Positions 5,190-53,138 of a DNA stretch of 64,000 bases are shown here, piece after piece. Source of the DNA: Mytilus trossulus (lineage: Eukaryota); NCBI RefSeq assembly GCF_036588685.1, contig NC_086380.1, positions 64,790,001 to 64,854,000 of the forward strand, written 5' to 3'. The translations under genes and the position numbers were made by a program. The notes beneath the pieces are model-generated. The model saw nothing but the letters and a program-made list of their open reading frames with translations, searched no databases and was not told where the DNA came from. The first letter of the stretch is position 1. Each line of letters begins with the position of its first letter.

Positions 5190-5249
5190 GTTACCAGCAT
5201 ACGGACTTTACTTGTCTTTTTCTAATAAATATATATGTATATATATATA

Positions 5250-7319: not shown

Positions 7320-7480
7320 GATTCAGCAAAATATTTTTATATATATTTTTGTTACGTTTATATGATATGATTGGAACTAGGGCGAACATTTCATTGCAGA
7401 GTTTGTCGTCTTGCAGATTGTTCCAATGTTTCCTTATATTTTTAATAAGATTCAAGGTTGAGGTTAGATACAAATGTAGC
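7320..7480 (-). pseudogene. Possible decayed Penelope-like RT/GIY-YIG linker fragment
   Basis: Peptide IRKHWNNLQDDKLCNEMFALVPIISYKRNKNIYKNIL resembles the 'KHW..L..D......F...P.iaY.R..Nl..iL' linker of PLE proteins. Flanking frames are broken. Confidence 0.4.
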
Positions 7481-8909
7481 GTTTGTACTAACAAACGTAA
7501 AAGGACAAACTGTAGACGCATTTTTAGCAAGTGCATAGTTTGTCAAAGCTATGTAAACTTTGCAAATGTATGTAAGAAATAAATGATCCAAACATCTGCG
7601 CTCTTAACCTTTTGCATCGTTTCTGTTACAAAGAAATGCACTCAGAATAATATTTAAAATTAACAGTACAAGAAATAAAATGTACGGGTCAAAAACCAGA
7701 GTAAGAGTGTTCGAATAACACATTATTACTAATAGAATTAGCCCCACCACATTCTATATTTGCCTGTTTCTAAGTCAGGAGCCTGTTATTCAATGGTTGT
7801 CGTTTATTACATTGTAACAAATTTGTTTTCGTTTATTATTTTGTTCAAAAATTACTTTGGGTTCATCAATTTACATGGATACTAATTTTCGTGGATAGAG
7901 AATAATTTGCATTTTGAGTGAAATTTTCGTGTATATACCACATTCTGCAAACACCCATGCACGATGCTAATTCCTGGGAACACAACATATTTGTTTTGAG
8001 GAAGTACATATGCTTTTGTAATGTTTTCAAACATTGAAGTTGCATGTGTATTCATGGACCTATCATTTTTTTTTAAATTCAGATTTATTCCAATGACCCG
8101 CCGCATTAATCTTATGTGCATTCATGTTTTTTTTCTTCTAGCTTTTAACCCATTATCTGGCATATTACTCGACTGATCTGACGTGGCTGCAGTTGTGTAC
8201 CTCCCGCACAACTAAACGGACGCCCCACCTTTACAAAGAGTTTACTGCTGGTTGAAGGAAGACAAATGATGACCATACTTTCATTTCCCAGTAACCATTG
8301 AGGATAAGACATAACATGACTACTGATTACGTTCCTGACCCGTAACAGGCTCATAATTGTGTGGCAGAGTTATACTATATATGTTTTAATCGTAACCCTC
8401 CAATTTGAGATCATCTGGATTAGTGAACGAAAATGGTACATGATTTTAATTTCAAATTTAAACAAGCGTTCTTATTTTGCTGTCGCGTGTTTTAATTCAA
8501 AAAGCTACATGAAATGTATTTATCTTTTTGTTTTACAATTTTAGGAATTTCTTTTGTAATGTCAATTATTGATGAAATTAAGTTGAAATTGACCCTTATG
8601 TTCCACTGATTTTTAAGCGGTTGAGAAATTAACATATCTCCAAACAATTTACAGATGTTCCATTATCTGGTCTTGCAAAAAAAGGTTGTTTTATATACAG
8701 CCTGTAGTATAATGTTATGTATTATCTTCTTTTGACGCTTATAGAATGTGCATATGCACAATTTTTTCCATTTCCTGTCCTAGTTTATTACCTAAACATT
8801 ATTTTACTACCTCATAAAATATCAAAATGTCATGTTGTATTTAATCAATTTAAACGCCAAAAACTAATTATATCTCACAAAGAGAATTAAAATAAAGTCA
8901 TTGCAATAC

Positions 8910-9101
8910 GTATTTGAAATATATCGGGGTTTGTTAAAAGAAGAACATAATATTTGAACTAGCATACGTGTACAATGTCACTAGATTTATAAATTTAGAA
9001 TAGGTATTTAAAATATATAGGGTTTTGTTTTAAAGAAGAACATTATATTTGAACTTAACTTAACGTACGTGTACAATGCCACAAGATTTATAATTTAGAA
9101 A
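8910..9101. repeat. Tandem duplication, 2 x ~95 bp
   Basis: GTATTT.AAATATAT.GGG...AAAGAAGAACAT.ATATTTGAACT...TACGTGTACAATG.CAC.AGATTTATAA occurs twice. Confidence 0.75.
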
Positions 9102-12100
9102 TTGATAAAATAATAATAGATAATATCGTTGAGAAATGTTTTGCAAGGGATGGCCAAATTTATAAAACACGGAAAAATATACATTACATGTACACCATTA
9201 ATTTTGATATCTTTTGTATATCAGATTAAACTTTCAATAGCAAACTCAGAGTTTAGTGGACATTAAATTGTAAAAGGATTGTTCGAATACAAACATTAGA
9301 TACGTAAAATCAATATCCTGACGGTTTTATGACATAGTAAATATTTAGAACAAAAAAAAATTAAAAAAAATAATAGTGTATTTTTAATCAAGAATGGTAT
9401 CAGAGTTCTGATGCAAATTTCTTTAATTGGAATAATTTATAACTTAATGAAAAAACTAATGTTAAAATATAATAAAACGCCTTAGAGCTAAAGTCAAACA
9501 ACTTGAAATTGATATTGACAATTTGATATAATTCGTCCGATATAGTTCAACATCAATCTGTTCCTAATAAAAAAAAAATGATTAAACAATCTCGAAATGA
9601 ATCCTATATCACCAAAAAATTATAAACGAAAAACGAAAAGAAGAATTTGCTTATATACTACTGGGAACTATTTGATAAATGGTCATTCAAAACTTGAAAG
9701 ATACTCCTTGAATTAAAGTGAAATGCAACAATAGTTTTCGATTTCATTAATCGAATAAGACGATCATATTATTCATGAACTGAATAAGTGTCTCATGATA
9801 TGCAGGTTTAACCTGCCACGCCAATCCATAACCATTTAAAATAAACAATTTGGAATAGAAAAACATTGGTATAAATACATACCAGATGGCAATTGACTTA
9901 ACTTAAGATTAACACCGCGAAACACGTACAAAATGAGATAGGAAACATACTCATTGTATATCCGAGGCAACTATGCGATATTGGCCGAAAAAATACTTGG
10001 TTTAAATTATACGTCATCTTTTTTTTATACTATGTAATTTCATAGTTAAAATAGTCAAACAAAAAAAAACTTTTGAGGAATATGGCCCGCTTAACATTGA
10101 AAAAATAAATTAATTAAGTCAAAATGTTCATTGACGTGTCTTGCATTGTTAAAACAACAACTGACAATTGTTTGACTAATTGTGTATGCTTGATGTTATT
10201 TATGATTTATTATTTATCAATTTCGGTAAATATGAATTCATAATTTGATTTCTATTTCTTACCTTTTTTATGCATTTAAATTGATTTTATATCGACTTCT
10301 TACAAGCAACATCAACATTAGAAAATTTGCTTCATCGCTGGCGTATGTTTTGAAGTTTTATGTTCCCTTTACAATGTTCTGTGTTCACTCATATTAATAG
10401 TAAATTCTCAATTTGTCCATACTTTCCATAGCATTGTATGTGCTAGTAATCGTTAACGGTACGTAATTATCTTACCTAGTCATTGATATTTTTAAAAAAT
10501 AAAAAGGTCATGTTTATTTAAATAATATATATTTACGTGGATTTTAACTCACAAGTAGATTATTTGTTGGCACATGCAAAGGTATGCCCGTACTTTTTAA
10601 AAACCTTTTTTTTTTTAAATAGGTCAATAAATTACGAAACCAAGCAATGTTTCCCTACCGGTTTATGTAACTTGAGGGATGATAACGAATTTAATCAATG
10701 TCTTTAATGGATTGGTTTACTTGTTAACCTAGATACGGTATGTGTAAATTAAAATGTTCAAGATACCATTAATAAATGATTATAATCATTTTTTATTTTG
10801 TTAAGAATTATATAAATTAACAAGAATAAATAGAATAAAAAATACAATTGTTCAGAGAACGATAGAAGGTCTTTTCAAATCAATTTTATAAATAATTAAT
10901 GAGAAGGCATTTCAGTATACTACAAAATATTTTTGGCGTCCACGCATAGGTTTCTTCATACTGATTCATTAGATAAATGTTCCATTATATCTTTGCCTGT
11001 TATAAGGGAGATAATTGTCAATTCCCTGTAAAAAATGTCACTAAATAGCTTTTTTTTTAACCCTGATTGCCAAAGTATATGGTATTTATATACTGTTGCC
11101 TGTAATATGACAGATCTTGATGTTGAGATCTTAATAAACATGTTTAACCCCGCCTCATTATTGCGCCTGTCCCAAGTCAAGACCCTCTAGCCTTTGTTTC
11201 TCTTGTATGATTTTAAATTTCGGTTTCTTTTGTATATTTTAGAGATTAGTATGACGTCCAGTATCACTGAACAAGTATACATATTTGTTTAGAGGCAAGC
11301 TGAAGCAAGCCTCCTCGCTGCTTTGAAGACCCATTGGTAGACTTCGGCTGCTGTCTGCTCTTTGGTTTGGTTGTTGTTTTATTTGACAAATTTCCATTTA
11401 CATCTTTATTACGTTTACATATTTGAAAAATATTTAGTTTTTTGGTACTTTTTCTATGAAATAAGTACTAAATATATACTCCCGGTTTACTCAAGGTCAC
11501 TTCCTTATTGAAAGGTCACATGGCAACCAACACTTTGGACACTTTTGCTCTTTCAAGTACCGAGGTGGGGTACTAATAGATCAACCTTAAATTAAATCAT
11601 TTCAGGTCCGATAATTCCTTAAAGATGATAATAGGACAACATTTTGCAATAGTTCTTATATTAAAAGTGACACAGAAGATATTGGAACAAGAAAAAACTC
11701 TACATTTTGAATTTGGCCTTGACCTTTGACCTTGACATAGTTTTCTATTCTTTGAACCAAGGCCATCAAATCAACAAACCATTGGTCTTTGTTACTTTTG
11801 ATTCACCAAGAGCAAATACATATCACTTATTTCAAAGTGAGCAATTTGATAAAATAAATTTATCGCTTTCTTTTATTGTTACGGATGAGATCTTATAACA
11901 AAGAAAACAGTGTTTTGGGAGATAACTGTTACAAAGAAAAGGTCTTCGACTAAACAGGTTTAATCTCAAAAGCGCAATTGCTGTTCCATATAATATGCAA
12001 AAAATCTAAGCAACAGAAATCTAGTTTTGAAATTTGTCAAAAGAATAAATAAATTAATCAGAACAAATACAACAGGTCTTCAAATAGAAAAGTGGAAAGA

Positions 12101-12340
12101 CATAAACACACTTATACACATGTATCTAATTAAACAATTGTCATTAATCCAATAACAACGTACTATTGTTCGAATGTGTTAACATTTCATTGTTTTTACT
12201 TACTTAAAACATTGAGTAAAAAACTTCACATTAACAAAAACACATTATGTGTAACAATTTTTGAAAAGAAAATTAAAAAGATAACATTTTCGGTATTATT
12301 GTCTTATATCTAAAAACAAAGGAAAAACAATTTCATTAGT

Positions 12341-13048
12341 ATAAATTGAGAATGGAATGGGGAATGGGTCAAAGAGACAACAACCCGACCAAATAAAAAA
12401 CAACAGCAGAAGGTCACCAACAGGTCTTCAATGTAGCGAGAAATTCCCGCACCCGGAGGCGTCCTTCAGCTGGCCCCTAAACAAATATATACTAGTCCAA
12501 TAATAATGAACGCCATACTAATTTCCAAATTGTACACAAGAATCTAAAATTAAAATAATACAAAACTAACAAAGGCCAGAGGCTCCTGACTTAGGACAGG
12601 CGCAAAAAAGCGGCGGGGTTAAACATATTTGTGAGATCTCAACCCTCCCCCTATACCTCTAACCAATGTAGAAAAGTAAACGCATAACAATACGCACACT
12701 AAAATTCAGTTCAAGAGAAGTCTGAGTCTGACATTGTCTGATGTCACCAAAGAAAATAAACAAAACGACAATAATACATAAATAACAACAGACTACTAAC
12801 AGTTAACTGACATGCCAGCTCCAGACTTCAATTAAACTGACTGAAAGATTATGATTTCATCATATGAACATCAGGCACAATCCTTCCCGTTAGAGGTTTA
12901 GTATCATACCATCATAACATATATGAGAAGAACATAACCCGTGTCATGCCAACAACTGTTTTTAGAATAAATGTCTTTAATTCCGATGCATAGACCTTAT
13001 CAGTGACTCAATATTAACAAAAAAAAATGCAATCTTTAATGACTTGAC
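12341..13048 (+). repeat. Interspersed repeat family B (ATAAA(A)TTGAGAATGGAAATGGGGAATGTGTCAAAGAGACAACAACCCGACC...), longest copy
   Basis: Same head recurs at 25149, ~26537, 48448 and 56145; a related minus copy lies at ~11139-11410. Confidence 0.8.
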
Positions 13049-13593
13049 ATGTACATACGCAGTATGTACGAGTACACTTTAACGTTAGACCTATGCTAGT
13101 ATGAAAACATGTACCAATAATACAAAACTCTTCACAGTTGCATAGTTAGGCCGAAGCTTGAGTTGTCATAGTGCTTTTGTACTATAACCAATTCATTGTA
13201 TTCTTGTCTTTCATTTTGCTAGTGTGTCTTGTCTATATGCCTGTTGTGTTTCTATATTACATGGGGTGGTATGTTCTAATACACCCATATGTTGTGTTTT
13301 TCTTGGCATCGTTTCTTCTTCTTAGAAACCGTAAATAAAGAATATTGGGGTAATTAATAAACTAAATATTCTATGCATAATCTATACACAATGTGACAAT
13401 TTTGCAAAGGCTGTAGCAGAAAAAGAACCCCGTTGACCCATACGGTTTTGTTTAACAAACAGTTACGCAGTAGGCTACAAAAAATGTATGTCTAGTTCGT
13501 CGGAGAAATGTTTCTAAAAGTATGAGGCGAGCGAGTGTAATTATTTTGTTTTATTTTTTTCTTAGAAATTTTGATTCATGGCGAGAGCTCTGC

Positions 13594-14084
13594 AAATAAA
13601 CTCATCATATATATCAGGACTTAATTTAGTATATACGCCAGACGCGCTCGAATCCAAAAAAGTTAAAAAGGTCAAATAAAGTACGAAGTTGAAGAGCATT
13701 GAGGACCAAAATTCCTAAAAGTTTTGCCAAATACAGCTAAGGTAATCTATGCCTGAAGTAGAAAAGCCTTAGTATTTAAAAAAAAATTAAAAATTTGTAA
13801 ACAGTAAATTTATCAATATAACCATATCAATGACAATTCATGTCAGCACAAACAGTGCTGACTAATGGGGTTGTGATACCCTCGGGGAACTAAATCTCCA
13901 CCAGCAGTGGCATCGACCCAGTGGTTGTAAATAAACTCATCATAGATATCAGGACTTAATTTAGTATATACGCCAGACGCGCGTTTCGTCTACAAAAGTC
14001 TCATCAGTGACGCTCGTATCCAAAAAAGTTAAAAAGGCCAAATAAAGTACGAAGTTGAAGAGCATTGAGGACCAAAATTCCTAA
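13594..14084 (+). repeat. Family C repeat, ~1.5 tandem units of ~335 bp
   Basis: AAATAAACTCATCATA.ATATCAGGACTTAATTTAGTATATACGCCAGACGCG at 13594 and 13929. Related copies ~14655-15145, ~53559-53632 and ~56640-56850(-). Confidence 0.75.
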
Positions 14085-36400: not shown

Positions 36401-37726
36401 CATAATATGATTATTGAAATAGTATCGATCGTACATCTTATCTGATTTTAGACAATTACATCATAAGGATTGCATAAAACTCTGTGAAACATTCAAAATA
36501 AATTCATATGCATACATTTCAAAATATATAAAGTAAAATTCAGGAAACAATAAAACAGTTCATCTTCAAGAATTTTATAAAAGCAGTATATTGATAACTT
36601 TGACATTTAGTGCTATTGTTTAGGGGGACAACTAATTTAACATTGTATAGTTACTATATCAGTCCTTTTCGTGTATAAAGTCCAACTTTTGTATATGCTC
36701 AAGGGGTTAACGAAGGATACATGTTTTACGTAACAAAGGGTTGGACGTTGCACAATCCTCCTCCTTACTAACCCGGGCTTTATTATTACTTTACAAATTA
36801 GTTTATTTGTAAGGTAGGGCGTGAACAATTACTTTTATTGAATATTGTGATAGAAATTTACTTTCTTCGAATAAGTGTTAAAAATTCTGTTGAATATTTC
36901 TTTACATATTGAGTACAAGTTTAAGTTTAACAATATATTACTCAAATATTTGTTTAAATCCACAAATTACAGGGTTTACAGTTTTGATTGCAACTGTGAA
37001 AAGGTTATATTTGAAAGGTAACAAGATCAAAATTTGGTATTTGCACCAAACGCCCGTTGAGTCTACAAAAAACTCATCAGTGTCCCGTAAATCGAGGGGC
37101 ATTAATTACTCTTTTAAAAATATTTAAGCGGTACTGATTTTCGAAATTGTTCGAGTCATTGCTGATATAAACCTATGATAATAATTTGATAAAAATCTTA
37201 CAAATATTGTGCATGCGAGAGGGCTTTTAATGAAATGTTTCCAAGGGGAATAACTCTTTATAAAATTCTAAGATTATTGAACTTTTCCGAGATTTTGTTG
37301 ATTTAAACCTACTTGTGAATTTAAATTGACAATCTGAGACGAAGTGTGCATATGAGACCGCTAACAATGTAATTACTTATATATTAAAAAATATATACAT
37401 TGTTGATCGGTACTGATCGTCGACATTTTCCACGACAATGATGATATTAGCCTAGTTTGATATGAGTTTTATAAAGATCTGTCAAACATTTTATATAAGA
37501 TAGAACGTTAACAAGGTTGGACAGACAAGCAGATAGACATATTGACTGACAACTAGTATGTACATTACTCCAGCAAAGCATCTCGATTAACAATCGTTTA
37601 CATATTACATTCCATAGTTTTGAATTATAATATGTATTTTTTGTTGATTTGTACTAGATTCAGTAAAAAATCGTATAAAATTTTTTACGACTTATTAGGT
37701 AAAACTAATATTACTATCATAATTAA

Positions 37727-37753
37727 GAGCCAATCCGCCAGAAAACCATGCAA
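37727..37753 (+). repeat. Left terminal inverted repeat of the Sola3-like element
   Basis: GAGCCAATCCGCCAGAAAACCATGCAA immediately after TTAA. Confidence 0.92.
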
Positions 37754-38503
37754 TATTCAGAAAATCGTCCAAATCGACAATCACAACTTGACAAATTTTT
37801 ATATACCATATCAATCCTTGACATAAAATAAAAAAAATTGGCCACTTAATTTTCGCCAGAATCGCATCTATTTTTAGTAACAGCCTCATTTGCATAATTA
37901 TGTAAATTCATTATAAAACCAATGAAAAATCCAACTTTTAATGCCTTTTAAGAACTACCCAAAAGCATATTAAATGGGGTAGTTGAGTTTTTAGAGTAAT
38001 GTCAGGTGGAACCCTTTCATTTTCCTATGTAATGGTCAATACAAATGAAAATTTAAACGATTTGGCACTTTGCCAGGAGCACGGACACAAAGGCGGGTTT
38101 TTTCATACCTGAATTTACATGGTTTTCATTTGCTTGTAACTTGCAAGACCTATTCCAGATATGTTTGCAACTTATATCAGTTTGAACTATGGGTATGATT
38201 TATTACAAAACAAAATATTAAGCTTGGCAAATGACTATTATATGTTTATTTTTACCTTGGAAGATTGGTAATTTTAGTCCCCTATTGACAAATTTTGATT
38301 TCATTTTAATTGAATTCTAAACACAATTGGAAATAAAATGACACATTTAATCATTTGGAAAAGTCAAATAAAGTAACTAAAACATGTAAATAAGAAGTGT
38401 TTGTACCGCAAGTGCAAAAGTCACTACATTGTCTGGAACTAGTGAGTCATCTTTTATGCTTTTCTGTGGACTTATCTCCCTTGGGTAAAGTCTCCACTCC
38501 AAA

Positions 38504-41500
38504 ATGTCAGCTTCCAGTGATGGTTTGACAGACGACATTTACAGTGAAGTTTGTGACTTTTCCTATCTTGGTGGAGGATGTGGGATATCCCATCACTATT
38601 CATCTTCACCCAATACACTCTTTAAAGTATATGAATGCACCAAACCTACTACTATTCACCTCAAACGTCTGAATAGTAGTGAAAGCTGTGATTTTCCAGA
38701 AGGGCTACTTATCCTGTATAGGACTGGTATTTTTACAATAGATGCAACAACAACTCAGCTTAGCATATGTCCTAAGCACAGGGACTTCTATGGTATCCAT
38801 TGGAAAAATAAGAGTGCCCGATGTCAACATCCAGACCACCCCTCTTCCAGCAAAGCCAAGGCTGACCGAGGATCTTCACCTTTGTTGTGCAAGCAGAACT
38901 GGCTGTATACCCGACAAATTATTCCCGTAGGAACAGGTAAAAATCTGACAGGCAATATTCATTTATTTTCTCATAGTCTGTAAGTCAATCTGAAATTAGG
39001 GGACCAATATTTTATACCTAGTTTAAAAAAAAGGGGGGGGGTGATGTTGATATTTTTTACACCTGTTTCTAAAACATCTTTTTTATTCATTTCCTATGGT
39101 TAGGAGTAAACAAATAATATCACTTTGAAATAATTTCATCTGTCTTGGTCAGTAAAGGCAGAAAGGGGACAACCTTTTGATTCCGAAAAAGGGAAGGGGA
39201 ATTAGAATAGTCAAAATATTTATCATGGTTATATATATCCACACCAGCTACATGTAAGCACAGAATACTCATTTTCAAGCTTAACAAGGTTACAACTAGT
39301 ACTGTAAACCATACAGCCTTCAACAATGAGCACATCCCATACAGCATAGTCAGCTATTACCTCATTTCAACATACATGTACTGTACTGTACTGATATCCT
39401 AGATATAGGAAGATGTGGTGTGAGTGCCAATGAAACAACTTCCAAACTACATCCAAATAACAATTTAAAAAAAGTAAACCATTATAGATCAATGTACGGC
39501 CTTCAACATGGAGCCTTGGCTCACACCGAACAACAAGCTATAAAGGACCCCAAAATTACTAGTGTAAAACCATTCAAACAGGAAAACCAATGGTCTAATC
39601 TATATATAAAAAAACAAGAAACGAGAAAATACCCTACATTTCCTGTTTTGTTGACTTTGCTTTGACTTATGTCTTATACATGTATATTTCATAAACAAGG
39701 AACACAGATTTTTTTTCTTTCATAGTTATACATATTTTGTTTGTAGGACTTTGCAAGCAATGCTCAATAAAGATGAAGAATTTTGTTAAAAGTGACAAGA
39801 CACAGGTCAAACTAAATATAGAAGAAGATGTTGGTAAGATATACTTTAAACTTTCTAATTTAACGGTTCGTTAGATATATATGATAACCATGATAACCAT
39901 ACAAGTAAATGAAATAACTTACATTAAATTACCTTATTACATGTACAAAAATGTATGTACATTGGATTCTAAGGAATAAATGTCATTAGCGCATACTTAC
40001 AATTTTCTTCCGATCAAATTGCTTGAATTTGTCTTTTTATTTTCATAGTACATACTTTTTCCGTGTACTAAGTAACTACGCATCAATGACCACAAGGGTA
40101 AGATTTCATTTTATTGTAATCAAGATATTGAAATAAAAATTGCTACTGACTATTTTGTAGAAAAAGTTGTGTTCCAAATTAAACTAGATAGTTTGTAATT
40201 AGTTTTCAAATTATTTTTTGAACAGGCTTCTATTTAATCTTTGGATTTAAAAATATTTTTGACGATTATAAAATTCTTTCATTTATATAAAGCGTAATAA
40301 ATATGGCACTTTATACCTTGATTAGAGAACAATGCCTTCTAAAATTGTAATCATTTATTTTCCTTGCAATTTCTGTGTACCCAAAAAAAGAGTGAACCAT
40401 GAAACCTTGTGAAAAGAAGTTAAAGCAATTTGATCTATTTTGTCATGAATTGATTGAATTTTGGTTACTTAATGACCAGTGACAGATATTTCATGCATTT
40501 AAACTAATATTTCATGCATGTAAACTATCAACTAAACCACCTATGGGCACATACCAGGGGCAGATCCATCTATTTTTAAAAGAGGTTCCATCCGAAGATA
40601 AAGGGGGAGGGGTCCAACTGTATGTCCCCATTCAAAAATATTGATAATGCCAAAATTACAAAGCCAATATTAAACCAAATTTAGGCTAAAACCTAATTTG
40701 TGGTACTTTAGTTGGCTGCTCCAATACATGCCCAAAATTTGAAAGGTTTTACTGCCTCCTGGAAATATATATAAAGTATCATATTTTATTCCCCAGCCAA
40801 TGAGAAATTTTAAATGGCTACTTATAGACTTATATTAGGAAAAATAGGGATGAATATTTTCACACTTTAGTGTAAATTTGAATTTTTCAGAATTGTTTGA
40901 GAGATTGTGTGGGAGCATTTCAAGTATCCATGAAGATAAGGAAGATACAGATTTAGGTAATTTTTTTAAGTTGAAAGGGTGTTTTCTAAAAATGACTTCT
41001 ACATGTTAAACTGAACTAAGTGCAGAGGTAGATTTTAGGGGGGGGGGGGCAGGCCCCTGGTCCCCCCTTTTGAGAAAAAATTTGGTTGATTATATAGGGA
41101 ATCACTGAAGCATGAAAGAAGTGGGCCCCATCTTAGGCAGCCAGTGGGCCCCCACTTATGAAAATTTCTTCATCCGCCGCTGTAGTGTTAAAAGGACAGT
41201 AACTATCTTTTCAAAATGACTGTCACTGCTTCCAAGTCACTACTAACACTAAATGATGATGGCATGACAGATTTCTTCACTCTTTTTATCACATTTCTCT
41301 CAATTAACAAATTGAACAGTAATGTATGCAGTATTACAAGCACAAACAATCAAAAAGTTTAAGAACAAGAGGAATCCTGAAACAAAGTCACACACACATA
41401 ATGACAACTCAAAAAAAGAAATACTGATGACTCAAAATAAAGATAAATAAGACATTTAAGAAAGGCAGGCTTATGAAACAGTTATTGATTTTTTTTAAGC

Positions 41501-44500
41501 CTTCCAAATTTGATTATAAGTGGAATGCTATGAAATAATACCACATGAATGACAAGGTTCTATAATAGAAAAAGAAGGTTGGGGTTATGGCCCCTACAGT
41601 TTAAAACTAAGGCAAAAAAAATCTTCTTATACTTTAGAAACAGCCAATTTCTTAACAAGTTTTAATCAGGTTTAATTTGAAGTCTTAAATTCTTGTTTTT
41701 TAATCTGCTAAATCTAAGATTTTAGATTAAAATTTAAATTTAGATATTGTCCTCATCTTGAATTTGTCCACAATCTTGACATGTTGCAAAATGATCCAAA
41801 ATTTAATTTTGTGATGTATGATTTCAACAAAAATTTAATTCTTGATGTATAATGTACAGAATATAAAGGATTATTTCAGTTATTGATCTTTTTGACATTG
41901 GTCCTGTTTTCAAATTGGTCCGTATTTCAAAGTTCTAACTTGGTTTAATTTCCATGAGGTACAAAATGGCAAACATATAGGTATGAAATAACGTACATGT
42001 TAATCTTCCATGAAATAAGAAATGGTATACAAGTTGATATGTCATAAGGTATGTATTGGTCTAGGAACAATTTTTACCAAAAAAAAGAAAATGTAACCTA
42101 ACAACGTTTCAACCTTTATTTTGACCTCCCCACTTTTTTAGCTTTGGTCAGGAAACTTTATTTACTGCATCAGCTTACACTAAAAAAAATATTTCATATC
42201 AGTCATGCGTGTTTGCTTGTACATATAATATAATAAAAAAAAAAATATGGAATAATTGTCAATAAGACAAGTCTCCACCAGATACCAAATGATATGGTAG
42301 TGAAGCTAGTGGCTACAATGCAGTCTTCAACAATGAGGTAGACTATACCCCATAGTCAGCTATAAAAGGTTTTAATATAAAGATTTAAAACAATTAAAAC
42401 AATTAAACTCATGTCTGGTGTATATTATTTAAGGAATGACTGTAATATTTTTTCTGTATATGAAGAAATAACATTAAAAATTTGGTGCACACTGAATAAC
42501 ATGTGTAGTTGGTTATTTAACAGTGTGCACCGCATTTTTAGCTGACCTGGCCTAAAATGAAAGTGGGAGTTCCAGGTGAAAGTTTTTGGTCAAGGTAGTT
42601 TTTGATGAAGCTGAAGTCCAATCAACTTGAGACTTAGTACACCTGTTGCATATGATATGATCTTTCTAATTGCAAAGCCAAAGTAGACTTTTGACCCCAA
42701 TTTCACAGTCCATTGAACATTGAAAATGAAAGTAGGAGTTTCAGGTTAAATTTTTTGGTCAAGGTAGTTTTTGATGAAATTGAAGTCATATCATCTTGAA
42801 ACTTAGTATACATGAGTTGCTGCCTCTAAATTGGTAATTTTAAGGAAATTTTACTGTTTTTGGTTATTATCTTGAATATTATTATAGATGGAGATAAACT
42901 GTAAACAGCAATAATGTTCAGCAAAGTAAGATTTACAAATAAGTCAACATGACCAAAATGTTCAGTTGACCCCTTTATGAGTTATTGCCCTTTATAGTCA
43001 ATTTTTAACCATTTTTCGTAAATCTCTTACAAAAATTTTCTCCTCTGAAACTACCTGTTCAAATTATCCAAACTTGGCCACAATCATCTTTGCTGTATGA
43101 AGTTTAAATAATGTGTCCGGTGACCCAGCATCAAACCAAGATGGCCGCCACGGCTAAAAATAGAACATGGAGGTTAAATGCAGTTTTTGGTTATTACTCA
43201 AAAACCAAAGCATTAAGAGCAAATCTGACAAGGGGTAAAATTGTTTATCTGGTCAAGATCTATCTGCCCTGAAATTTTAAGATGAATGGGACAACCCGTT
43301 GTTGGATTGCTGCCCCTGAATTGGTAGTTTTAAGGACATTTTGCTGTTTTTGGATATTATCTTGAATATTATTATGGATAGAGATAAACTGTAAACGGCA
43401 AAAATGGTCAGCAAAGTAAGATGTACAAATAACTTAACAGGGCCAAAATGGTCAATTGACCCCTTTAGAAGTTATTGCCCTTTATAGTCAATTTTTAACC
43501 ATTTTTTGTAAATCTTAGTTGACTTTTACAAAAATCTTCTCCTCTGAAACTACCAGGCCAAATTTAACCAAACATAGCCAGAATCATTATTAGGCTATTT
43601 AGTCTAAAAATTGTGTTTTGTGACTGGGCAAACCAACCAAGATGGCCACTACGGCTAAAAATATAACATAGGGGTAAAATGCAGTTTTTGGTTTATAACT
43701 CAAAAACCAAAGCATTTAGAGCAAATCTGATAAGGGGTAAAATTGTTTATCTGGTCAAGATCTATCTGCCCTGAAATTTTTAGATGAATCGGACAACTCG
43801 TTGTAAGGGTGCTGCCCCTAAAATGGTAATTTTAAGGAAATTTTGCTGTTTTTGGTTATTATCTTGAATATTATTATAGATAGAGATAAACTGTAAACAG
43901 CAATAATGTACAGCATTTTAAGACTAAAAAATAAGTCAAAATGACCAAAATGGACAATTGACCCCCTAAGAAGTTATTGTCCTTTATAATAATTTTTTTT
44001 ACAATTTTCATAAAATTTGTAAATTTTTACTAACATTTCCACTGAAACTACAGGACAAGTTCATTATAGATAGAGATAATTGTAAGCAGCAAGACTGTTC
44101 AGTAAAGTAAGATGTACAAACACATCACAATCACCTAAACACAATTTTGTCATGAACTGCCTGCTTCCTTTGTTAAATTCACATGTCCCAAGGTGAGCGA
44201 CACAGGCTCTTTAGAGCCTCTAGTTTATGTTATTTCGAATAGACAGAAAAATTATTACAGTCATTTCTTAGGATTTAATTCTAAATTCCATTTTAAACCG
44301 TAGAAAAACATGAAAAAACGTTGATGACATCATGGTCACATGACTTAATTATGTGTATGGCATGTATGGGCTCATAACAAAATAACGTCAGCCAATCAGA
44401 AGAAGCGTTACATTCAAAATTAAATTATATAAATATGTTTTGTTTTTTACAGATCTAGACTCACAGTTATCTTTTTTGTCGACAACAACGTTAACTGAGC

Positions 44501-47500
44501 TTTCACAGCAGTCGACATCAGATTGGGAGGCTGATAATGCTTCTGGAAGAGACAAATTCAACAGGGCCATGAATATTCTCGGCAATGGAAAGTTTCCAAC
44601 TTTAAAACACCAATTAAAGCTTCCTTGGGATGATGTCTCAAAAAGTACAAAGGCAATGTATTTGAAGTTTACCTCTGATGTTGTTAATTTGATCATTCAA
44701 TATATTGCACCTGGGCAAGAAAACAAAATTATGGCAGACTTAAGTGAGAAATATATGTATCTCAATGATGACAATCAGACAACACATGATGATATGACCA
44801 AAGCACTCATACAAGCATATTTGGACCAAAATAACAGTCAAACTCAAATTCAAATTCTTTCCTTGTTTGTTCAAAAATTTACCAAACAGAAGCTAATTGA
44901 ATTAATTCCAGGACTTACTATGTCAAAAATTGACAGAGCTAGGAAACATGCTAATTTGGAAAAACCTGGACAAATGATAAATTCTCCTAGGATATACAGA
45001 ATGCGATTAAGTCATCCTCAACTCATGCATTTCATTGAGTTTATTTCTAGCCCATCTTACCATCAAGCAGTTGGATATGGATCAAAAACTCTTCAGCTTT
45101 CATCTGGTGTTGAAATGAAAATTCCGAAGGTAGTTCGAAGCATTATTTCATCAAGACTCATAAAGGCATACATGGCTTACTGTAAAGACCAAGATTATGA
45201 TACATTTTCAAGATCAACATTATATAACATTCTTAATGTCTGTATTGCATCTCAGAAAAAAAATCTACATGGCTTAGACAACACCACAGCTGATGGTATG
45301 AAAGCAATGGACACATTGACTGATATCATCAAGAAATTACAGTTGTTTGGACTAGAAGAGGAAAAAGTGGAAAAACTTAAAAATATCTTTGCATGTGCCA
45401 ACCAACATTTAAAATTTGAAATAAAGGGTCATCTAGCCACATCTTCAACTTGTTTAGATCACTGTACCACATTTAGCCTCAGTGACTCAAAATCCACTCA
45501 ATTTCGTTCAACTTGTGCTCATGAACATTCAGAAGGTTGTACCAAGTGCAGTATTATAGATAAGTCACTACTAGAATTATCAGATACATTCCAAAACATG
45601 AATTCCATCCCGGCAGAAATAGTAGATGAAATAGATCATGACTTATCACGAGCACAAGAGCAGATATTGACATGGAAGGCACATTGTGTCAGAACAGTTC
45701 ACCAAGATCAAGCTAAACAAACAGTGCTTAGTCATTTAAAACCTCATCAGGCCCTTATAGTAATGGACTGGGCTATGAAGTTTTTACCTGTGAGACACAG
45801 AGAAGCCCAAAGTGACTTTTTTGGTAAAAAGGGAGTAAGCTGGCATGTTTCGTCGGTTGTCACACTTGATATTGAGGCTGAACCTGAATTTAAGACGAAC
45901 TTTAATGTACACACTCTTGTGCACATTCTTGAGTTGGGCAATCAAGGATGGTTTTCTGTAGCTCACATAATAACTGACCTGCTACAGAAATTACCACTTA
46001 TATTACCTTTGGTAACTGAAATCTTTCTAAAGAGCGACAACGCTGGATGTTACCATTGTGTGCCATTGATTTCTTACATCCAAAATATCAATGTAAATGG
46101 AGGCTTGCCAGTTAAAATTCTGCAATACAACTTTAGTGAAGCACAGTCTGGCAAAGATATATGTGATGCCAAAACATCTCACTGCAAGATGCATATATTG
46201 AGGTATGTTTGTAATATCTTGTTAAAATATCTTCTATAATCATGATAATCATGGCAATACTGTAATTTGATGACATTTTTAAAACAATTTTGTAATCATA
46301 TGATTATGAATACTGCAATTGTTTTAGAAAACATGGAAAAAAGACTTCCCATTTTAAATATAATGATTAAATGACTTAAGACAATCCTGTCAAAATCATG
46401 AAATAATCATTCATTAGAGATATAAGAAGATGTGGTATGAGTGCCAATGAGATAAATCTCCAGCCAAGTCACAATTAGTAAAAGTAAACATTAGTCATAT
46501 GTCATAGTACGGTCTTAAACACAGAGCCTTGGCTCACACCAAACAGCAAGCTATAACAATGTATAAAGGGCCTTAAAAATTACTAGTTTAAAACCATTCA
46601 AACTGGGAAACCAACAATTTAATCTAGTATATAATTAGAAACAAGAAGCACTTATGAACTACATCAACACATGACAACTGCTGATTCAGAATATATATAC
46701 ATGTACATGTATATGCACTATTTTTGTTATATGAAGTTACCGTACTCGCTTAAATCATTTGCTAATCTCTGGAAAAAACATTAGTTATATAATCAGGTTA
46801 ATATTTATAACACTCTTACATGTATTAGGAGATATATATTCCAATTTTTCAATACACATTTGTTAAAGGTCCTATTAATATTTTACAGTTCTGCCAACAT
46901 GACCAAGGACCATAGGACAAACTTCTTTTTATTTTCCTCACCAACAAAGTTCTGGCTCACTAAAAAAAAGCCTTGCTCATACAATGAATGCATTTTTGTT
47001 TTGTTTTTTAGGTACTCTGGTGAGGGACATGATGTTTTGTCTGCAGAAGATATGTCAACTGCCTTAAACTCAAACGGAGGTGTTATAGGGGTTTTCAATG
47101 CTGTGGTTGCAATTGATCAGAATCATCAGACCAAGACAAAAACCAAAATACCCAACATTAGTGCAATGAACAATTTTGAGTTCGACAGTGAAGGTGTTAA
47201 AGTGAGGCGTGCCTATGGAATAGGAAATGGCAATTTCATACCAAACCTTCAGTTTAAGGACAACAAACTCATGGAAGGTTTTCAGGTAAACTTAGTGAAT
47301 TTATGAAGAAACATGTGATAAATGTCCATGATATAAGTACCAAGTACATTTTTAAATTGAAAAATCGATCTGATAACTTTAGAAATAAGAGGATTGAGTT
47401 ATATTATACAACACTCAACCAGATACCAAGTTATTTAAAAGTTAGTAACTACATCATATAGCTCATCATACAATCTTCAACAATGAGTAAAGACCATACA

Positions 47501-49406
47501 ACATTAGTGAGAAATAAAATCTCAAATTGACAAATCTAAAATTAGCAGCCTTATGTATGTATAAAACTAAAGATGAAAATCAAATTTTATTTATACAAAA
47601 AAGGCACACATGGAATGTGGCAGTGGCTAGACCAGTTAATAAAAATAAACTATGCTAACAGAAAAGGAATATACTCATCTAATTGATCATGTTGATCCAA
47701 AGCAAATTTAAACCCTAGCAAAAAAACAAAAGTCACATGTTACAGATCTGATAGTTCTCTGAGTTAATATAAGTTAATTTTTGAACTATTACACAAACAA
47801 TGTGTTTAATCATGTTAATACTACGTACAAAAATATTCATCATATAAATGATATGAATACAAAAAAGATAGATGTTTATGCGCCTGTCGTAGAGGAGGGG
47901 TCATTACTTTTCAGCAATGTCTGTCTATACCTTCATAGACCTGTAGGCCAAAAATGTCATTTTCTGTTCTCTAACTTGAGTTAACCTAATGTTTTGAAGC
48001 TTATATACAATGTTTATTACAACAAAACGCAGATCAAGTATAAATTTTGGTGACATCACTTTCAACATTCTAGAGTAACGCACCTTTACAAAAGTAAAAT
48101 TTGCTGAGTTTACATTTCTGTTCTCTAACTTAATTAGATATAGGAAGATGTGGTGTGAGTGCCAATGAGACCACTCTCCATCCAAATAACAATTTAAAAA
48201 TTAAACCATTATAGGTTTAAGTACGGCCTTCAACACGGAGCCTTGGCTCACACCGAACAACAAGCTATAATTTGCCCCAAAATTACTAGTGTAAAACCAT
48301 TCAAACAGGAAAACCAAACCAAATGTTTTGAAACTTATGCTCGTAGCTTATAAGTACCAATTTGGATAGGCACTGTTTCTCTTCTTCGTTTATCATTTTT
48401 ATGTCCCATTGTGAACACACATGTGGAATATATATTGCTGCAGAATAATAAAATTGAGAATGGAAATGGGGAATGTGTCAAAGAGACAACAACCCGACCA
48501 AATAAAAAAAACAACAGCAGAAGGTCACCAACAGGTCTTCAATGTAGCGAGAAATTCCCGCACCCGGAGGCTTCCTTCAGCTGGCCCCTCAACAAATATA
48601 TACTAGTTCAGTGGTAATATAGTTTTTTCATAATTTACCTTTTTTTGTAGGTAATTATTCCATTTTCAAATTTTGTTGCGGACCATCATGGGAGAGTTGT
48701 ACTTGCAAGGAATAATATTGATGTTGAACATGAAAATATGGGCAATGATAATGACACTGAAAATAATGGTAATGAGAATGTCACTGAAACTGTGGAGAAT
48801 GAGATGGAAGAAGATGTGAGTAATGATGGTTTATTTGCGTGTCCAGATCAAAGTTGCACCAAGGTGTTTACAAAACCTCATTTCCTAGAAGCACATATAG
48901 TAATTGGAAATCATGTGTATTCAACTAGTGAGAATAGTTACGATTCTGTCAAATTGATTTGGGCACAACAATGTGAGGCAGTTGACAGAGAACACAAAGT
49001 TCTCATACAATCGGTTTCTTCAATCAATATGAATGTCAATGAAGGATGGGCTCTGAAACTGAACAAACCTTTTAAAAGATTCACCAAAAAGGTAAAAGAC
49101 TTTCTCTTTGATATATATGTAAAGTGTGAAAGTTCAGGGAGAAGACCAAATTTTGATACATTAGCAACTGAACTCAAGACAACAAGACATGAGAATGATG
49201 GCACCAAAATGTTCACACGGGAAGAATGGCTATCATCATCACAAATACGCAGTCTTTTTGCTAATTTTGTCAGGCTTGGTGCTGAAACTTCTTTAAAATC
49301 AGAAGATACTGCTGTGATAGAAAATGTTTTAGAGGAAATCGATTCACTTGAATATCACAACAATATGACAGAATTGGCAACCGATGTTGTGCAGCAGTTT
49401 CTGTAG
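38504..49406 (+). CDS. Sola3-like DDD transposase, 6 exons: join(38504..38936,39747..39833,40891..40956,44453..46202,47012..47285,48651..49406), 3366 nt, ~1121 aa
   Basis: All introns are GT-AG with compatible phases (1,1,1,2,0) and the joined frame has no stop. Junctions rebuild plausible motifs (IIPVGT|GLCKQC, HILR|YSGEGHDV). Candidate catalytic Asp in VMDWAMKF (45766-68), KSDNAGCYH (46036-38) and FSEAQSGKDICD (46165-67). Cys/His clusters at the N-terminus and at CLDHC...CAHEH...CTKC. C-terminal C2H2 finger CPDQSCTKVFTKPHFLEAHIVIGNH. Short exon 3 is the least certain. Confidence 0.85.
41023..41182. mobile_element. Short GC-rich MITE with near-perfect 5-bp TSD, in transposase intron 3
   Basis: CAGAGGTAGAT...ATCCGCCGCTG flanked by AAGTG / TAGTG. 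Confidence 0.6.
42428..44430. repeat. Palindromic (foldback) repeat interrupted by the HINE
   Basis: Left arm AAGGAATGACTGTAATATTTTTTCTGT...AAATAACAT...GGTGCACACTG pairs with CAGTGTGCACC (42521-31) and, after the insertion, ATGTTATTTC...ACAGAAAAATTATTACAGTCATTTCTT (44227-44268). The right boundary is approximate. Confidence 0.65.
42540..44224 (+). mobile_element. Non-autonomous Helentron-type element (HINE/DINE-1-like) with internal tandem repeats, inside transposase intron 3
   Basis: Sub-terminal inverted pair GCTGACCT (42541-48) / AGGTGAGC (44191-98). 3' hairpin AGGCTCT-tt-AGAGCCT (44204-19). T-rich flanks. ~490-500-bp unit repeated ~2.5x (starts near 42819, 43309, 43811). It splits a palindromic host repeat. 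Confidence 0.75.
48448..48617 (+). repeat. Family B repeat, truncated copy in transposase intron 5
   Basis: Nearly identical to 12341-12505. Confidence 0.8.
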
Positions 49407-51743
49407 ATGTTCATGTGTGCATGTTCATAATGCTCTATTTGGTGTATTGTATTTTGTTGAATAACTATGTAATATTTCATTTCAAAGATACATGTACTGA
49501 TATTGCAACTGTTTGCCTGTTCTGACATACGATTTGGTATGCTTGATTTCATAAAAAAAAGACATTCCTTTTAACAAATTTCAAAATGACTGCCTTAATA
49601 TGTAAGTCATGTAAGTGGTACATTTATGTGGAGAAAAATGTTTTGCTCTTGATGTTCTCCAAGATTTTTTTTTAAAAAGTGATATGAAATATCCATTTTA
49701 CTATCATAACTTTTGAAGCAATGCATGCAGATATATACTGAACTAAGTTCTTTTTCCATGTTTTTCTTTATGTTGATTACGAATAAATTTAACAGATAAA
49801 TTGACAAATGTGAATAGATAAAGCCACAATCATTTTTTTTCTTTTAATTTTCCATGGATTCCAAGTTATGAATTAAAGTTTTCCCTCACAGTTGTTGAAT
49901 AATTTAAATGTTTTGAATTGTGCTTTTAAGAACAAGTAATTACTTTTTAACCTTCCTCATTATGCACATTTGTTTACATCATGTTTTTCCCCTTGCACTT
50001 TCACTGTGTAGGCGACAAAGGTCTAACAAGAGGTCATTGTTAAGGTCAATGCATATAGAAAGACAATATTTTAATAGAAGTTCAACTATGAAGATTTTAA
50101 TTGATATTATAAAGAATGTTCTTTTACTAGAATGTAAACCTACTCTTGATGTTATTGTATAGTAAAAATTAACCATTGAAGCATAAAAAACATTTTTTTT
50201 TTTATTTTGAAGTACAGTTATCATAACAATTTAAACTTTTCATTCAAAATTCTTTATAAATTTTGCACCAGTATTGTAGACTTAGAAATTTGTTAATGTA
50301 TGATTTTAATAGGAGAATGTTTTGTATATGTCATGAAATAAAAAGGCATTGAGTTAGGGTATTTTACTTATTTGAGCCATGGCTGCTTTAAAATAGAGTA
50401 TAAGGATGATTTTCAGTGAAAAGAAAATATAGGATAAGAATTATAATAAGGTGTTATAAAGCATGTTTTATGTGATGGAAATATGCAGTGTCTGTGAATA
50501 TAAATGTTGTATGCAATATGTGTAATGTTACAACATATAAAGTGTTTTACTTGTCTTTTATGTATTTTTTGGGGATGTTTTCAAACATACATTTTCATCC
50601 TAAGTGTGTATTGACATCATTGCCAAGAAACATTGTTAGCTTACTAAGTGTCTGTCAAAATTATCTCTCTATTATAATGTTGCTGTTGTTAGTCTTTTTT
50701 TATCATTATCTTGATAACAAAAGAAGAAGCGTTCTTCATATATATTTAAATATAAACTATCAACATAACATGGTATAAACACATCAATAAATTTTTGAAA
50801 AATTGGTAATTTTATCTTCCATTAATTGTCCCTGATATGATTGAATCTACCATTGCTTTTGAACAACTATATCAATATATACTAGAATAAATTGCATTAA
50901 TGGTTAGTAGGAACTGTTCTTTTACAGTCTGAACTTTTACTTAATTGTTTAAATATTAAATCTCTTTTAAAGTTGTTGCTCTGAAAATGTGTGTTTTTAT
51001 CTGCTTTTAGTGCATAATTTGTTAATTAAAGGTATTCTGCTCCTATGAGCCTCTTCATTTATGATGAATTATATTGTTCTTTTGTTTGATTATTTGCTTA
51101 AAGCATTAAATTAAACATGAATTATTCTTTTCAATTTGTTGTTATACTTATTTATAAGTCCAGCTCCAATATTATGTCAGTAGTTACAAACTAGATGGCA
51201 AAATTGAGAAAATTTGAATATGCAGGTTACCCCATTTTGATTTGGCATATACCAGATACCAACATTATTTGCCGAGCTTAATATTTTTTTTGATTGGGTA
51301 TATATAGTTATACTTTGCAAGCAAATATGTTGTTTTACAATAATAAACGGGTCTTGGAGTATTTTGGCTCTGAAAGATGACCAAAATCAGCCATTTTGGA
51401 CATGAGGCTAAACGAGACATATTGAAACGGATAGATTATACATACACGTAATAGACAGCATTGTTATTTTTATGCATTCTTACACCTAATGTGATGTTTT
51501 ACTAGGAACAACTATCAAAAAATAATTATTGTTGCTATTTTTTTTTATTTTACCTGCAAAATATGCCAAAAAAGGCTTATTTTTGCTGTTTTCGAGCAAT
51601 TTCATCTATTTAAAGATGGTGGTCCAAAAAATTCAGATCGGTTCAAAATTTTCCAAAAAAAATTTGTGAGGTTATTTACATTACTAAGGTGCACCAATGT
51701 GCCAAATATGAACTCATTTGGCAAAATTGGCATTCGGACGGTT

Positions 51744-51770
51744 TTGCATGGTTTTCTGGCAGATTGGCTC
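51744..51770 (-). repeat. Right terminal inverted repeat of the Sola3-like element
   Basis: TTGCATGGTTTTCTGGCAGATTGGCTC immediately before TTAA; 1 mismatch to the left TIR. Confidence 0.92.
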
Positions 51771-52863
51771 TTAAGTTAACAAAAAATAAAAATAAATCAA
51801 AGAACAATTAGCATTTTTTTTTATTTATTTAGAGGAAAATGTCAACAATGTCAATACACTTGATATTTGTATTGATATTTATTGATTACGGACATACTGG
51901 TAATAAGTTATTTTCTATCAGTCTTTAATTGTAAAAAAAAACATTACAGAAACAAAAACCAAACGCGTGAAATTTATCTAAATATACTGAATATTGCTCC
52001 TAGAACTAAACATGGTAACATGAATTCGCGTACGTAACAGATAAAACAATTACAAAGAATATAAGAAGGCTCAAAATATCTACAGTAGAAACCCATCTAT
52101 ATATCTGTGACACGCCAATATATATCGTACAATTTTCAAAATAACGCACACCTGCCCTACACATTTTCTTTTTCTAAAACCAATAAAATCATTTTCATTT
52201 GCAATAGTGAACACAAGCTTTAACTTTTTTTAAGTCAGTAAGACACCTCCATATCAAAATCAACAAAACATTTAAGAAATCAAAATAAGTAATATGTGTA
52301 TTTATTTTCAAGCTGTTTTGTAGACTTATAAAATGAAATGATAAAAAGTAAAGTTCATCCGTTATCAAAGGAACGTTTTTCAAAAAGTAGATAAAAGAAA
52401 GACTATAAACTATCATGAATGGAAACGAATAAGGCCAACTGGTTTGAAAACATGAAGATTCTTTTTGTATTTTAATGGTTTATTATAGAATTAAACACAT
52501 TCTTTTCTAAAGGTTATTCATGTGTAAACCGGTGCGATTAACTCCCAAACAAAAGTCCAAAGGAAAAATGTGTTTAATCCTTATAATTCTTCAACAAAAC
52601 ATCTGCGATTTTTAGTTCACATATACAGCATTTGTTTATGTAGATAATGGTGAACTTGTTTAATAGCTAACTAAACATCTTCCTTGTATGACAACCGCAT
52701 CCAATTCCTTTATATTGACAACGAGATGTGAAGAAAAAAAAACACATACTAGGTCAATTTTCAAAATAGGGGTACAACAGACAACATTGTGTTATAATCC
52801 TAATCACTGCAAAAAATACAAATGTGTAACTCAGGTGTACAAAAAGGCATATATAATATACAA

Positions 52864-53138
52864 ATAGAAATAGGAAGATGTGGTGTGAGTGCCAATGAGA
52901 CAACTCTCCATCCAAGTAACAATTTAAAATCATTATAGGTTAAAGTACGGCCTTCAACACGGAGCCTTGGCTCACACCGAACAAGAAGCTATAAAGGGCA
53001 CCAAAATTACTAGTGTAAAACCATTCAAACGCGAAAACCAACGGTCTTATCTATATAAACAAAACGAGAAACGAGAAACACGTATATATTACATAAACAA
53101 ACGACAAATACTGTACATCAGATTCCTGACTTAGGACA
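52864..53138 (+). repeat. Family A2 repeat (ATAGGAAGATGTGGTGTGAGTGCCAATGAGACAACTCTCCATCC...CCTTGGCTCACACCGAAC)
   Basis: Copies also at 39400-39629, 46417-46684 and 48136-48316 (all in transposase introns) and ~34270-34503(-). Confidence 0.8.

Follow-up and report, generated by a model that had tools for sequence, protein, structure and literature searches.

A Probable Sola3-Group DNA Transposon with a Six-Exon Transposase Gene in the Genome of Mytilus trossulus

Introduction

Within a 64,000-nt stretch of the Mytilus trossulus genome (hereafter the window), a 14-kb segment (37727-51770) encloses several stop-free coding blocks between two facing terminal repeats. The question raised by this locus is whether the segment comprises a complete DNA transposon or a gene of the host and, if a transposon, to which superfamily it belongs and whether its family still moves. 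A first-pass annotation made from the sequence had proposed an intact Sola3-like element of a recently mobile family. Few cut-and-paste transposons of eukaryotes have been studied as little as Sola elements and, to our knowledge, no active Sola copy has been demonstrated. The analyses described here make it highly probable that 37727-51770 is a structurally complete autonomous Sola3-group transposon, which represents a new family in Mytilus and encodes one 1121-residue transposase in six exons.

Ends of the Element and Its Copies in the Genome

The element is bounded by a pair of 27-bp terminal inverted repeats (TIRs) located at 37727-37753 (forward strand, beginning GAGCCAATCCGCC...) and 51744-51770 (reverse strand), which are complementary at 26 of 27 positions, so that the element starts with GAG and ends with CTC. 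Both TIRs adjoin a TTAA (37723-37726 on the left, beginning at position 64827723 of genome contig C8, and 51771-51774 on the right), in full agreement with the flanks and the GAG-initiated repeats described in the first-pass annotation. The left TIR carries a C at position 10 and the right TIR a T; in all copies seen, the C was specific to the left end, and the T was present in all right ends seen. Beyond the TIRs, a 21-nt subterminal motif was found about 485 bp from the left end (38212-38232, forward strand), with a right partner matching at 20 of 21 positions (51267-51287, reverse strand). A long degenerate TIR was considered and rejected, as past the 27-bp repeats this motif was the sole mirror motif above shifted-register controls.

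A genome-wide search with both ends yielded at least 40 matches for each end in the same 1.3-Gb genome (68-100% identity), and the TIR pair is therefore not a product of chance. Homology breaks exactly at the TTAA/GAG boundary in nine of ten left ends and nine of ten right ends (18 of 20), with unrelated DNA beyond. Eight further paired copies of 4.8-16.2 kb were recovered, and all of them have TTAA on both sides, as do nine of nine when the 37727-51770 element is counted. In the assembly, the latter is the sole copy that combines both ends with a full set of open exons. Identity to it is about 98% for a sister copy on C5, in which the six exons are likewise open, 97-99% for two partial copies, and 98.4-98.5% for terminal fragments. 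Many internally deleted derivatives were also observed, among them derivatives with ~84% identical ends and decayed coding remnants. Additionally, the same genome harbors dozens of diverged paralogous families, and GAG...CTC termini were found in a sister family of 61% identity.

That insertion duplicates TTAA was demonstrated with one member of the family, for which a paralogous empty site, ...AAAATAG-TTAA-AAAGCC..., carries a single TTAA. This sequence is uninterrupted in L006 and in the window at 13939-14032, and is filled on C10 by 16.2 kb of DNA with TTAA on either side. For the 37727-51770 copy itself no empty site was found, both of its flanks being single-copy in the assembly.

Gene Structure, Introns, and Transcripts

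The four open reading frame fragments noted in the first-pass annotation correspond to stop-free blocks at 38489-38980, 44386-46236, 46785-47303, and 48651-49403, and full-length homologues (1007-1206 aa) align collinearly with all four. The exons were searched separately, and the frame of the six-exon model was checked exon by exon, including the split codons. This reproduced exactly the 1121-codon open frame put forward earlier, with six exons bordered by GT..AG and totaling 3363 nt. Together the introns span 7,537 bp (the ~7.5 kb originally estimated), and the element is long because these five introns travel along with it.

All exons lie on the forward strand. Exon 1 (38504-38936; 433 nt) begins with an ATG at 38504 and aligns collinearly with proteins from oyster, mussel, and amphioxus, and its donor (38936/GTAAAA) is present in spliced contigs. 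The two predicted micro-exons were both recovered: exon 2 (39747-39833; 87 nt; G-LCKQC...) has GT..AG joints at both borders in three runs, whereas exon 3 (40891-40956; 66 nt), encoding an ELFERLC... motif common to oyster homologues, has its acceptor at 40891 in three runs and a probable donor at GTAATT. The borders of exon 4 (44453-46202; 1750 nt) were taken from M. coruscus models and GT..AG sites, and those of exon 5 (47012-47285; 274 nt) and exon 6 (48651-49406; 753 nt plus the TAG stop) from homologues and gene models. Exon 5 also offers an in-frame alternative donor (47201/GTGAGG), the one chosen in the gene model of M. coruscus. Junctions 3-4, 4-5, and 5-6 are accordingly based on homology, M. 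coruscus gene models, and consensus splice sites.

RNA contigs and reads were compared with the stretch up to position 42800, ending before the intron 3 tandem array. The joints 38936/39747 and 39833/40891 were matched exactly by spliced contigs of three runs, which come from three studies under three organism labels, and both micro-exons fall on these RNA-supported junctions (1-2 and 2-3). Each run provided one long spliced contig (X1, 4,967 nt; X3, 3,777 nt; X4, 1,163 nt), with one to four mismatches in exon 1. Transposase mRNA is thus made and spliced, as shown for exons 1-3, and its source could be the sister copy rather than the 37727-51770 copy. In a 6% sample of the raw RNA run X21, exons 1-3 showed no depth.

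The introns contain further repeats. A MITE/SINE-like repeat in intron 1 (39401-39620) shows very high depth in RNA contigs, and related copies occur in intron 4 (46418-46647) and intron 5 (48135-48317), the last of which is missing from the sister copy on C5. Intron 3 holds a tandem array (42813-44226) of about 500-bp units; these units constitute an independent repeat, also present elsewhere and in both orientations. Intron content varies among the element copies, and intron 4 was present only in families of 57-100% identity, being absent from the Sola3 families of 40-46% identity in the same genome. A gain of introns inside the transposase gene in this lineage, followed by colonization by other repeats, is a tentative scenario. 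The locus documents a DNA transposon carrying 7.5 kb of introns that gather other repeats, with the exons staying open.

Homologues and Their Public Annotation

At E <= 1e-3, searches with exon 4 retrieved 3,618 cluster representatives, among which proteins of 1000-1200 aa are numerous and the hosts include fish, amphioxus, oysters, mussels, and nematodes. Of the named proteins, those nearest to the element are from Mytilus, which bears out the mollusc-like genome proposed from the sequence. Among them are two M. coruscus gene models with about 90% identity to the element, CAC5370795.1 over exons 1, 2, and 4 and CAC5370794.1 over exons 4, 5, and 6; the two therefore stand for this element family in a sister species. 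Their annotation is that of two neighboring host genes without names, and relative to the six-exon model they lack exon 3 and part of exon 1 and have the short form of exon 5. The M. coruscus homologues P0006 and P0039 are genome annotations, not transcripts. It had been anticipated that a gene finder would split the element or call it a host gene, and public annotations indeed split or fuse homologous copies into 'unnamed' host genes.

Transposase Domains and Fold

The exon 4 product comprises a helical region, a Cys/His module (45460-45549), and an RNase H-like catalytic core. The three candidate catalytic Asp residues of the first-pass annotation are D634 (45766-45768), D724 (46036-46038), and D767 (46165-46167), equivalent to D438, D528, and D571 of exon 4; all 50 homologues compared have D438 and D528, and at least 90% of them keep D571. 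In the structure model (pLDDT 86), the triad takes up canonical positions, with one residue at the end of β1, one at the end of β4, and one where the last helix begins. The modeled domain aligned with retroviral integrase cores with Z scores of 11-13.3 and an rmsd of 1.7-2.4 Å over 104-113 residues (VIA-align), and the Foldseek E-values for the same integrase matches were weak (1e-2 to 1e-3). The core is thereby confidently modeled as an RNase H/integrase-like fold with a DDD triad, as had been expected.

Zinc-binding motifs had also been pointed out, and we identified two of them: the Cys/His module of exon 4 (45460-45549), which is conserved, and a C2H2 zinc finger in exon 6 (48834-48902). 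A Cys/His-rich domain is conserved N-terminally in exon 1, with its Cys motif completed by exon 2, and is presumed to bind DNA. The Pfam search of the four exon ORFs and eight full-length homologues returned nothing above threshold, a sub-threshold zf-C2H2 being the one weak hit of interest, and a profile of the 50 homologues compared with PDB sequences detected C2H2 fingers only and no transposase.

Assignment to the Sola3 Group

Majorek et al. (2014) list Sola3 as group E.13, with Sola3-1_HM from Hydra (Repbase) and C. remanei CRE_08425 as representatives (PMC3985635). The core of exon 4 exhibits the blocks MDW, EAQSDFFGKKGxSxHV, KSDNAGCYH, and FSEAQSGK..CD, which match both representatives; a count by eye against CRE_08425 in the published alignment (PMC3985635) gave about 40 identities over 85 block positions, SDNAGCYH and FSEAQ.GK among them. 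Blocks of Sola1 and Sola2, printed alongside (PMC3985635, supplement file 5), differ from the exon 4 core. A curated bivalve TE library lists no Sola3 consensus (PMC10294476). Exon 4 was also linked by HMMER to C. brenneri proteins bearing the same motifs (E about 1e-48). The Sola3-like identity suggested earlier is therefore supported by the block motifs (in the by-eye comparison), the HMMER link to Caenorhabditis, the DDD fold, and the TTAA duplication. Sola3 transposases are ~1.1 kaa long, and according to what Bao, Jurka and Kapitonov reportedly described in 2009, Sola3 elements make TTAA duplications and end in GAG...CTC; the target-site duplication is unstated in other papers that name Sola3.

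TTAA is also the target of other superfamilies, and piggyBac likewise duplicates it. The TTAA duplication and the GA...TC termini additionally fit the description of Kolobok, namely a TTAA duplication with 5'-RR...YY-3' termini (PMC9587614). The transposase itself, however, argues against both. The segment separating its second catalytic residue from its third lacks a C/DxxH signature, the sole His between D528 and D571 being that of GCYH with a CxH spacing, and its third catalytic residue is a conserved Asp instead of the Glu of Kolobok. PF13843 (DDE_Tnp_1_7), the piggyBac domain, was detected neither in the four exon ORFs (E <= 1) nor in the eight full-length homologues (E <= 0.01). With no solved transposase found by the sequence profile and core motifs that match the Sola3 references and not Sola1 or Sola2, membership in Kolobok or piggyBac is very improbable.

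Mobility and Proposed Mechanism

The 98% sister copy, the 97-99% identical partial copies, and the deletion derivatives indicate, judging from sequence identity, that the family was recently active, in line with the recent mobility claimed in the first-pass annotation. The element appears potentially autonomous, and we infer catalysis, TIR binding, and present-day mobility for it. In the cut-and-paste process proposed here, the transposase would bind the 27-bp TIRs, excise the element, and integrate it at TTAA, which would be duplicated. Identical or near-identical TIRs bound many internally deleted copies and a sister family, both of which the transposase would probably mobilize in trans. The five introns, which MITE-like and tandem repeats have colonized, travel with the element.

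The multi-exon structure, the spliced transcripts found under several Mytilus labels, and the public annotation of homologous copies as host genes could also be expected of a domesticated, transposase-derived host gene that retained TIR-like ends. Near-identical copies nevertheless reside at non-homologous sites, each with its own TTAA duplication, deletion derivatives have the same ends, intron content varies between copies, and dozens of diverged paralogous families share the genome, which together render domestication most unlikely. More weight is due to the reading that this is a complete-looking but immobile copy, whose family has stopped moving and whose open frame and transcripts persist only as the copies are young. 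A single copy in the assembly combines both ends with all exons, its nearest relatives differ by 1-3% and not 0%, and run X21 showed no exon depth (exons 1-3, 6% sampled). Against this stand the six exons open in two ~98% identical copies, the canonical splice sites, the spliced mRNA assembled in three runs of three studies, and the intact TIRs that keep their family-specific left/right difference. We regard an immobile family as possible, though on the unlikely side.

A family that is currently mobile in Mytilus, and that would provide the first experimentally tractable Sola transposon, is likewise a tentative proposition. If true, it would offer a cut-and-paste system that is specific for TTAA and has no sequence relationship to piggyBac, in which the spliced 1121-aa transposase and the 27-bp TIRs could be tested directly, including for scarless TTAA restoration on excision. 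The ends of the 37727-51770 copy are defined, TTAA duplication is proven for its family, RNA supports its exon model over exons 1-3, and its catalytic residues are clear; the copy is therefore a concrete candidate for transposition assays as well as a reference for annotating bivalve genomes. The element is a good but unsurprising addition to a rarely characterized group of transposons.

Comparison with Known TTAA-Targeting Transposons

With Kolobok, the element shares the TTAA duplication and the purine-purine/pyrimidine-pyrimidine termini; it differs in the absence of C/DxxH, in a last catalytic residue that is D and not E, and in its Sola3 core motifs. The TTAA-specific 4-bp duplication, short TIRs, and all-Asp triad in an RNase H-like fold are shared with piggyBac, from which it is separated by the lack of PF13843, no detectable sequence similarity, and GAG...CTC termini; its best structural matches are retroviral integrase cores, with no piggyBac transposase among the matches listed. 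The correspondence with Sola3 extends to the core motif blocks, the DDD triad in an RNase H-like fold, the 4-bp target-site duplication, the short TIRs, and a transposase of about 1,100 aa with zinc fingers that is covered by no Pfam family. Within that group, the element is set apart as a new Mytilus family that carries five introns totaling 7.5 kb, with two micro-exons.

Element Ends and Target-Site Duplication

Our analyses support reading 37727-51770 of the window as a Sola3 element that is complete and expressed and belongs to a young mussel family; we infer its present-day mobility and biochemical mechanism. The first-pass annotation had described 27-bp terminal inverted repeats (TIRs) bordered by TTAA, and the ends were recovered in that form: the left TIR (GAGCCAATCCGCCAGAAAACCATGCAA, 37727-37753) pairs at 26/27 positions with the reverse complement of the right TIR (51744-51770), and TTAA lies on both sides (37723-37726 and 51771-51774), in a window whose G+C content is 28–35% over its whole length. 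The sole mismatch, at position 10 (C in the left TIR, T in the right one), was seen in all copies compared and is a feature of the family, not decay of the window copy.

Queries of 200 bp from either terminus of the element gave at least 40 matches apiece in the 1.3-Gb assembly, at 68–100% identity. Among the ten best loci per end, homology breaks exactly between TTAA and GAG in 9/10 left and 9/10 right ends, and the DNA outside TTAA is unrelated. The suggested genome-wide search for paired ends yielded eight other paired copies (4.8, 5.5, 6.7, 6.96, 6.97, 9.6, 11.2, and 16.2 kb), with TTAA on both sides in 8/8. The 16.2-kb copy, on contig C10, is inserted within a dispersed repeat, unfilled paralogues of which (fetched locus L006:2534-2660 and window 13939-14032) read ...CAAAATAG-TTAA-AAAGCCAAA... 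with a single TTAA, whereas the filled site reads ...CAAAATAG-TTAA-[16.2 kb]-TTAA-AAAGCCAAA...; TTAA was therefore duplicated upon insertion, which demonstrates in this family member the target-site duplication (TSD) claimed earlier. Both flanks of the window element are single-copy in the assembly, and hence a search through them returned no paralogous empty site there.

Gene Model and Splicing

Four stop-free blocks were found to be collinear with full-length relatives of 1007–1206 aa. Exon borders were taken from two Mytilus coruscus gene models (P0006 and P0039; ~90% identical to the window) together with oyster RefSeq models, which exposed an 87-nt exon at 39747-39833, and a 66-nt exon (40891-40956) was located through the ESFERLC motif conserved in oyster. 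These constitute exons 2 and 3, alongside exon 1 (38504-38936), exon 4 (44453-46202), exon 5 (47012-47285), and exon 6 (48651-49403, plus a TAG stop). The reading frame was verified per exon, each split codon being read on its own. All 5/5 introns (in order 810, 1057, 3496, 809, and 1365 bp) have GT..AG borders, and the exon total of 3363 nt (1121 codons) and intron sum of 7,537 bp exactly reproduce the six exons, 1121 codons, and ~7.5 kb of introns first proposed.

At least 74% of exon 4 31-mers were present in each of twenty RNA runs from twelve studies, filed under four organism labels; exon 4 reached ~99% or more in runs of four labels. Contigs of the RNA runs X1, X3, and X4 were mapped to 38450-42800, a stretch covering exons 1–3. 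One long contig per run (4,967 nt in X1, 3,777 nt in X3, and 1,163 nt in X4), with 1–4 mismatches in exon 1, spans two joints: 38934>39745, which skips 810 bp and shows GT..AG when the cut is moved +2, and 39832>40890, which skips 1057 bp and does so when it is moved +1. The two joints coincide, base for base, with introns 1 and 2 as modelled. As the assembly contains no intronless copy and the contig sets of these runs amount to only 88–242 million letters, the contigs are best read as spliced mRNA. Within exons 1–3, the splicing anticipated from the sequence thus held for introns 1 and 2 in three runs, and the raw RNA-seq run X21, sampled at 6%, gave no exon depth.

State of the Family and Related Elements

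Exon 4 occurs at 99–100% identity in only four places in the assembly, and the window copy alone retains both termini together with six open exons; genome matches fall mostly on fourteen large contigs. A sister copy at C5:53.72 Mb (~98% identical, all exons open) is without the first 352 bp of the element within the 20 kb fetched and differs from the window copy by 608-bp and 578-bp indels. At C5:65438000-65466500 (loci L023, L036, and L024), two partial copies face each other head to head across ~9 kb, comprising element positions 6952-14044 on the + strand and 1-8372 on the − strand with a 1.4 kb overlap; a 614-bp segment with exon 2 is in triplicate, and the right end adjoins TAAA, not TTAA. 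This arrangement looks like aberrant transposition or rearrangement. The 4.8–16.2 kb paired copies have ~900 bp in common at each end (~84% identity) and retain as coding remnants only decayed exon 1 pieces and the exon 4 start, and are therefore non-autonomous derivatives.

A 17.9-kb sister family (C5:55521445-55539345, loci L047 and L048), whose exon 4 is 61% identical to that of the window, has perfect 27-bp TIRs, TTAA on both sides, and one stop in the exon 6 equivalent. Its TIRs (25/27 identical to those of the window family) are much better conserved than the protein, so cross-mobilisation between the two families is conceivable. More diverged Sola3 ORFs are abundant in the genome (659 first-look candidates), and several of them occur as sets of near-identical open copies. 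The 57% (L049), 61% (L047/48), and 100% (window) identical families contain intron 4, which the 40% (L045, C13:25.55 Mb) and 46% (L046, C5:71.14 Mb) identical ones lack; in the latter two, exons 4 and 5 form one open frame. This is intron gain or loss within the transposase lineage.

The introns also house repeats. A MITE/SINE-like repeat of ~185–230 bp has three copies within transposase introns (39401-39620, 46418-46647, and 48135-48317) and a further one at 52863-53055, its depth in RNA contig sets being 1e4–1e5; the 48135-48317 copy is missing from the 98% sister element and was therefore inserted after the two copies separated. A highly expressed repeat with strongly strand-biased raw reads (42392-42800) precedes a tandem array of ~500-bp units (42813-44226), which recurs at other loci in both orientations and is hence an independent repeat, not an ancestral part of the element.

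As predicted, public Mytilus annotations call host genes on copies of the elements (P0006/P0039 in M. coruscus, P0011 in M. galloprovincialis, P0092 in M. edulis). One copy has been broken up into two neighbouring models, another appears as a partial 'hypothetical predicted protein', and a third carries the UniProt label A-kinase anchor protein 7-like phosphoesterase domain-containing protein, a name that points to a chimeric gene model.

Catalytic Core and Sola3 Assignment

The three candidate catalytic Asp motifs proved conserved. In a 50-sequence alignment, exon 4 residues D438 and D528 (D634 and D724 of the full model) are invariant and D571 (D767) is at least 90% conserved, along with a Cys/His set (H336, C337, C354, H356, H358, C362, and C365). 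The AlphaFold2 model built from this alignment (pLDDT 86.3) has a predicted β1-β2-β3-α-β4-α-β5-α topology with the three Asp at canonical positions, and residues ~425-582 superpose on retroviral integrase cores (Z 11–13.3, rmsd 1.7–2.4 Å, 104–113 residues).

The ends and TSD alone cannot separate Sola3 from Kolobok, because the latter also has TTAA duplications and RR...YY termini (PMC9587614); the C/DxxH signature of Kolobok is, however, absent from the window transposase, and D occupies the final catalytic position. piggyBac is excluded, since neither PF13843 nor sequence similarity of any kind was found. A domesticated host gene is excluded by the multiple copies with TTAA flanks of their own.

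A Pfam search of exon ORFs and full-length homologues gave no match, and a sequence profile found no solved transposase in the PDB, its matches being confined to the C-terminal C2H2 finger (E 8e-6). HMMER detected 3,618 exon 4 relatives at E<=1e-3 among 1.84 billion cluster representatives, the named ones belonging to Mytilus (the source of the closest), oysters, damselfish, amphioxus, Panagrolaimus, and Caenorhabditis, all recorded as 'uncharacterised' or 'C2H2-type domain-containing'; the genome probably belongs to a Mytilus species. In their supplement, Majorek et al. 2014 (PMC3985635) print RNase H-like core sequences for Sola1-1_AP, Sola2-1_HM, Sola3-1_HM, and C. remanei CRE_08425. Compared by eye with these, exon 4 bears the Sola3 blocks ..VMDWAMKFLP.., ..EAQSDFFGKKGVSWHV.., ..LKSDNAGCYH.., and ..NFSEAQSGKDICD..., which C. 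brenneri matches (E ~1e-48) also bear. These blocks, with ~40/85 block positions counted by eye as identical to CRE_08425, support the proposed Sola3 assignment, whereas the blocks of Sola1 and Sola2 differ clearly from those of exon 4.
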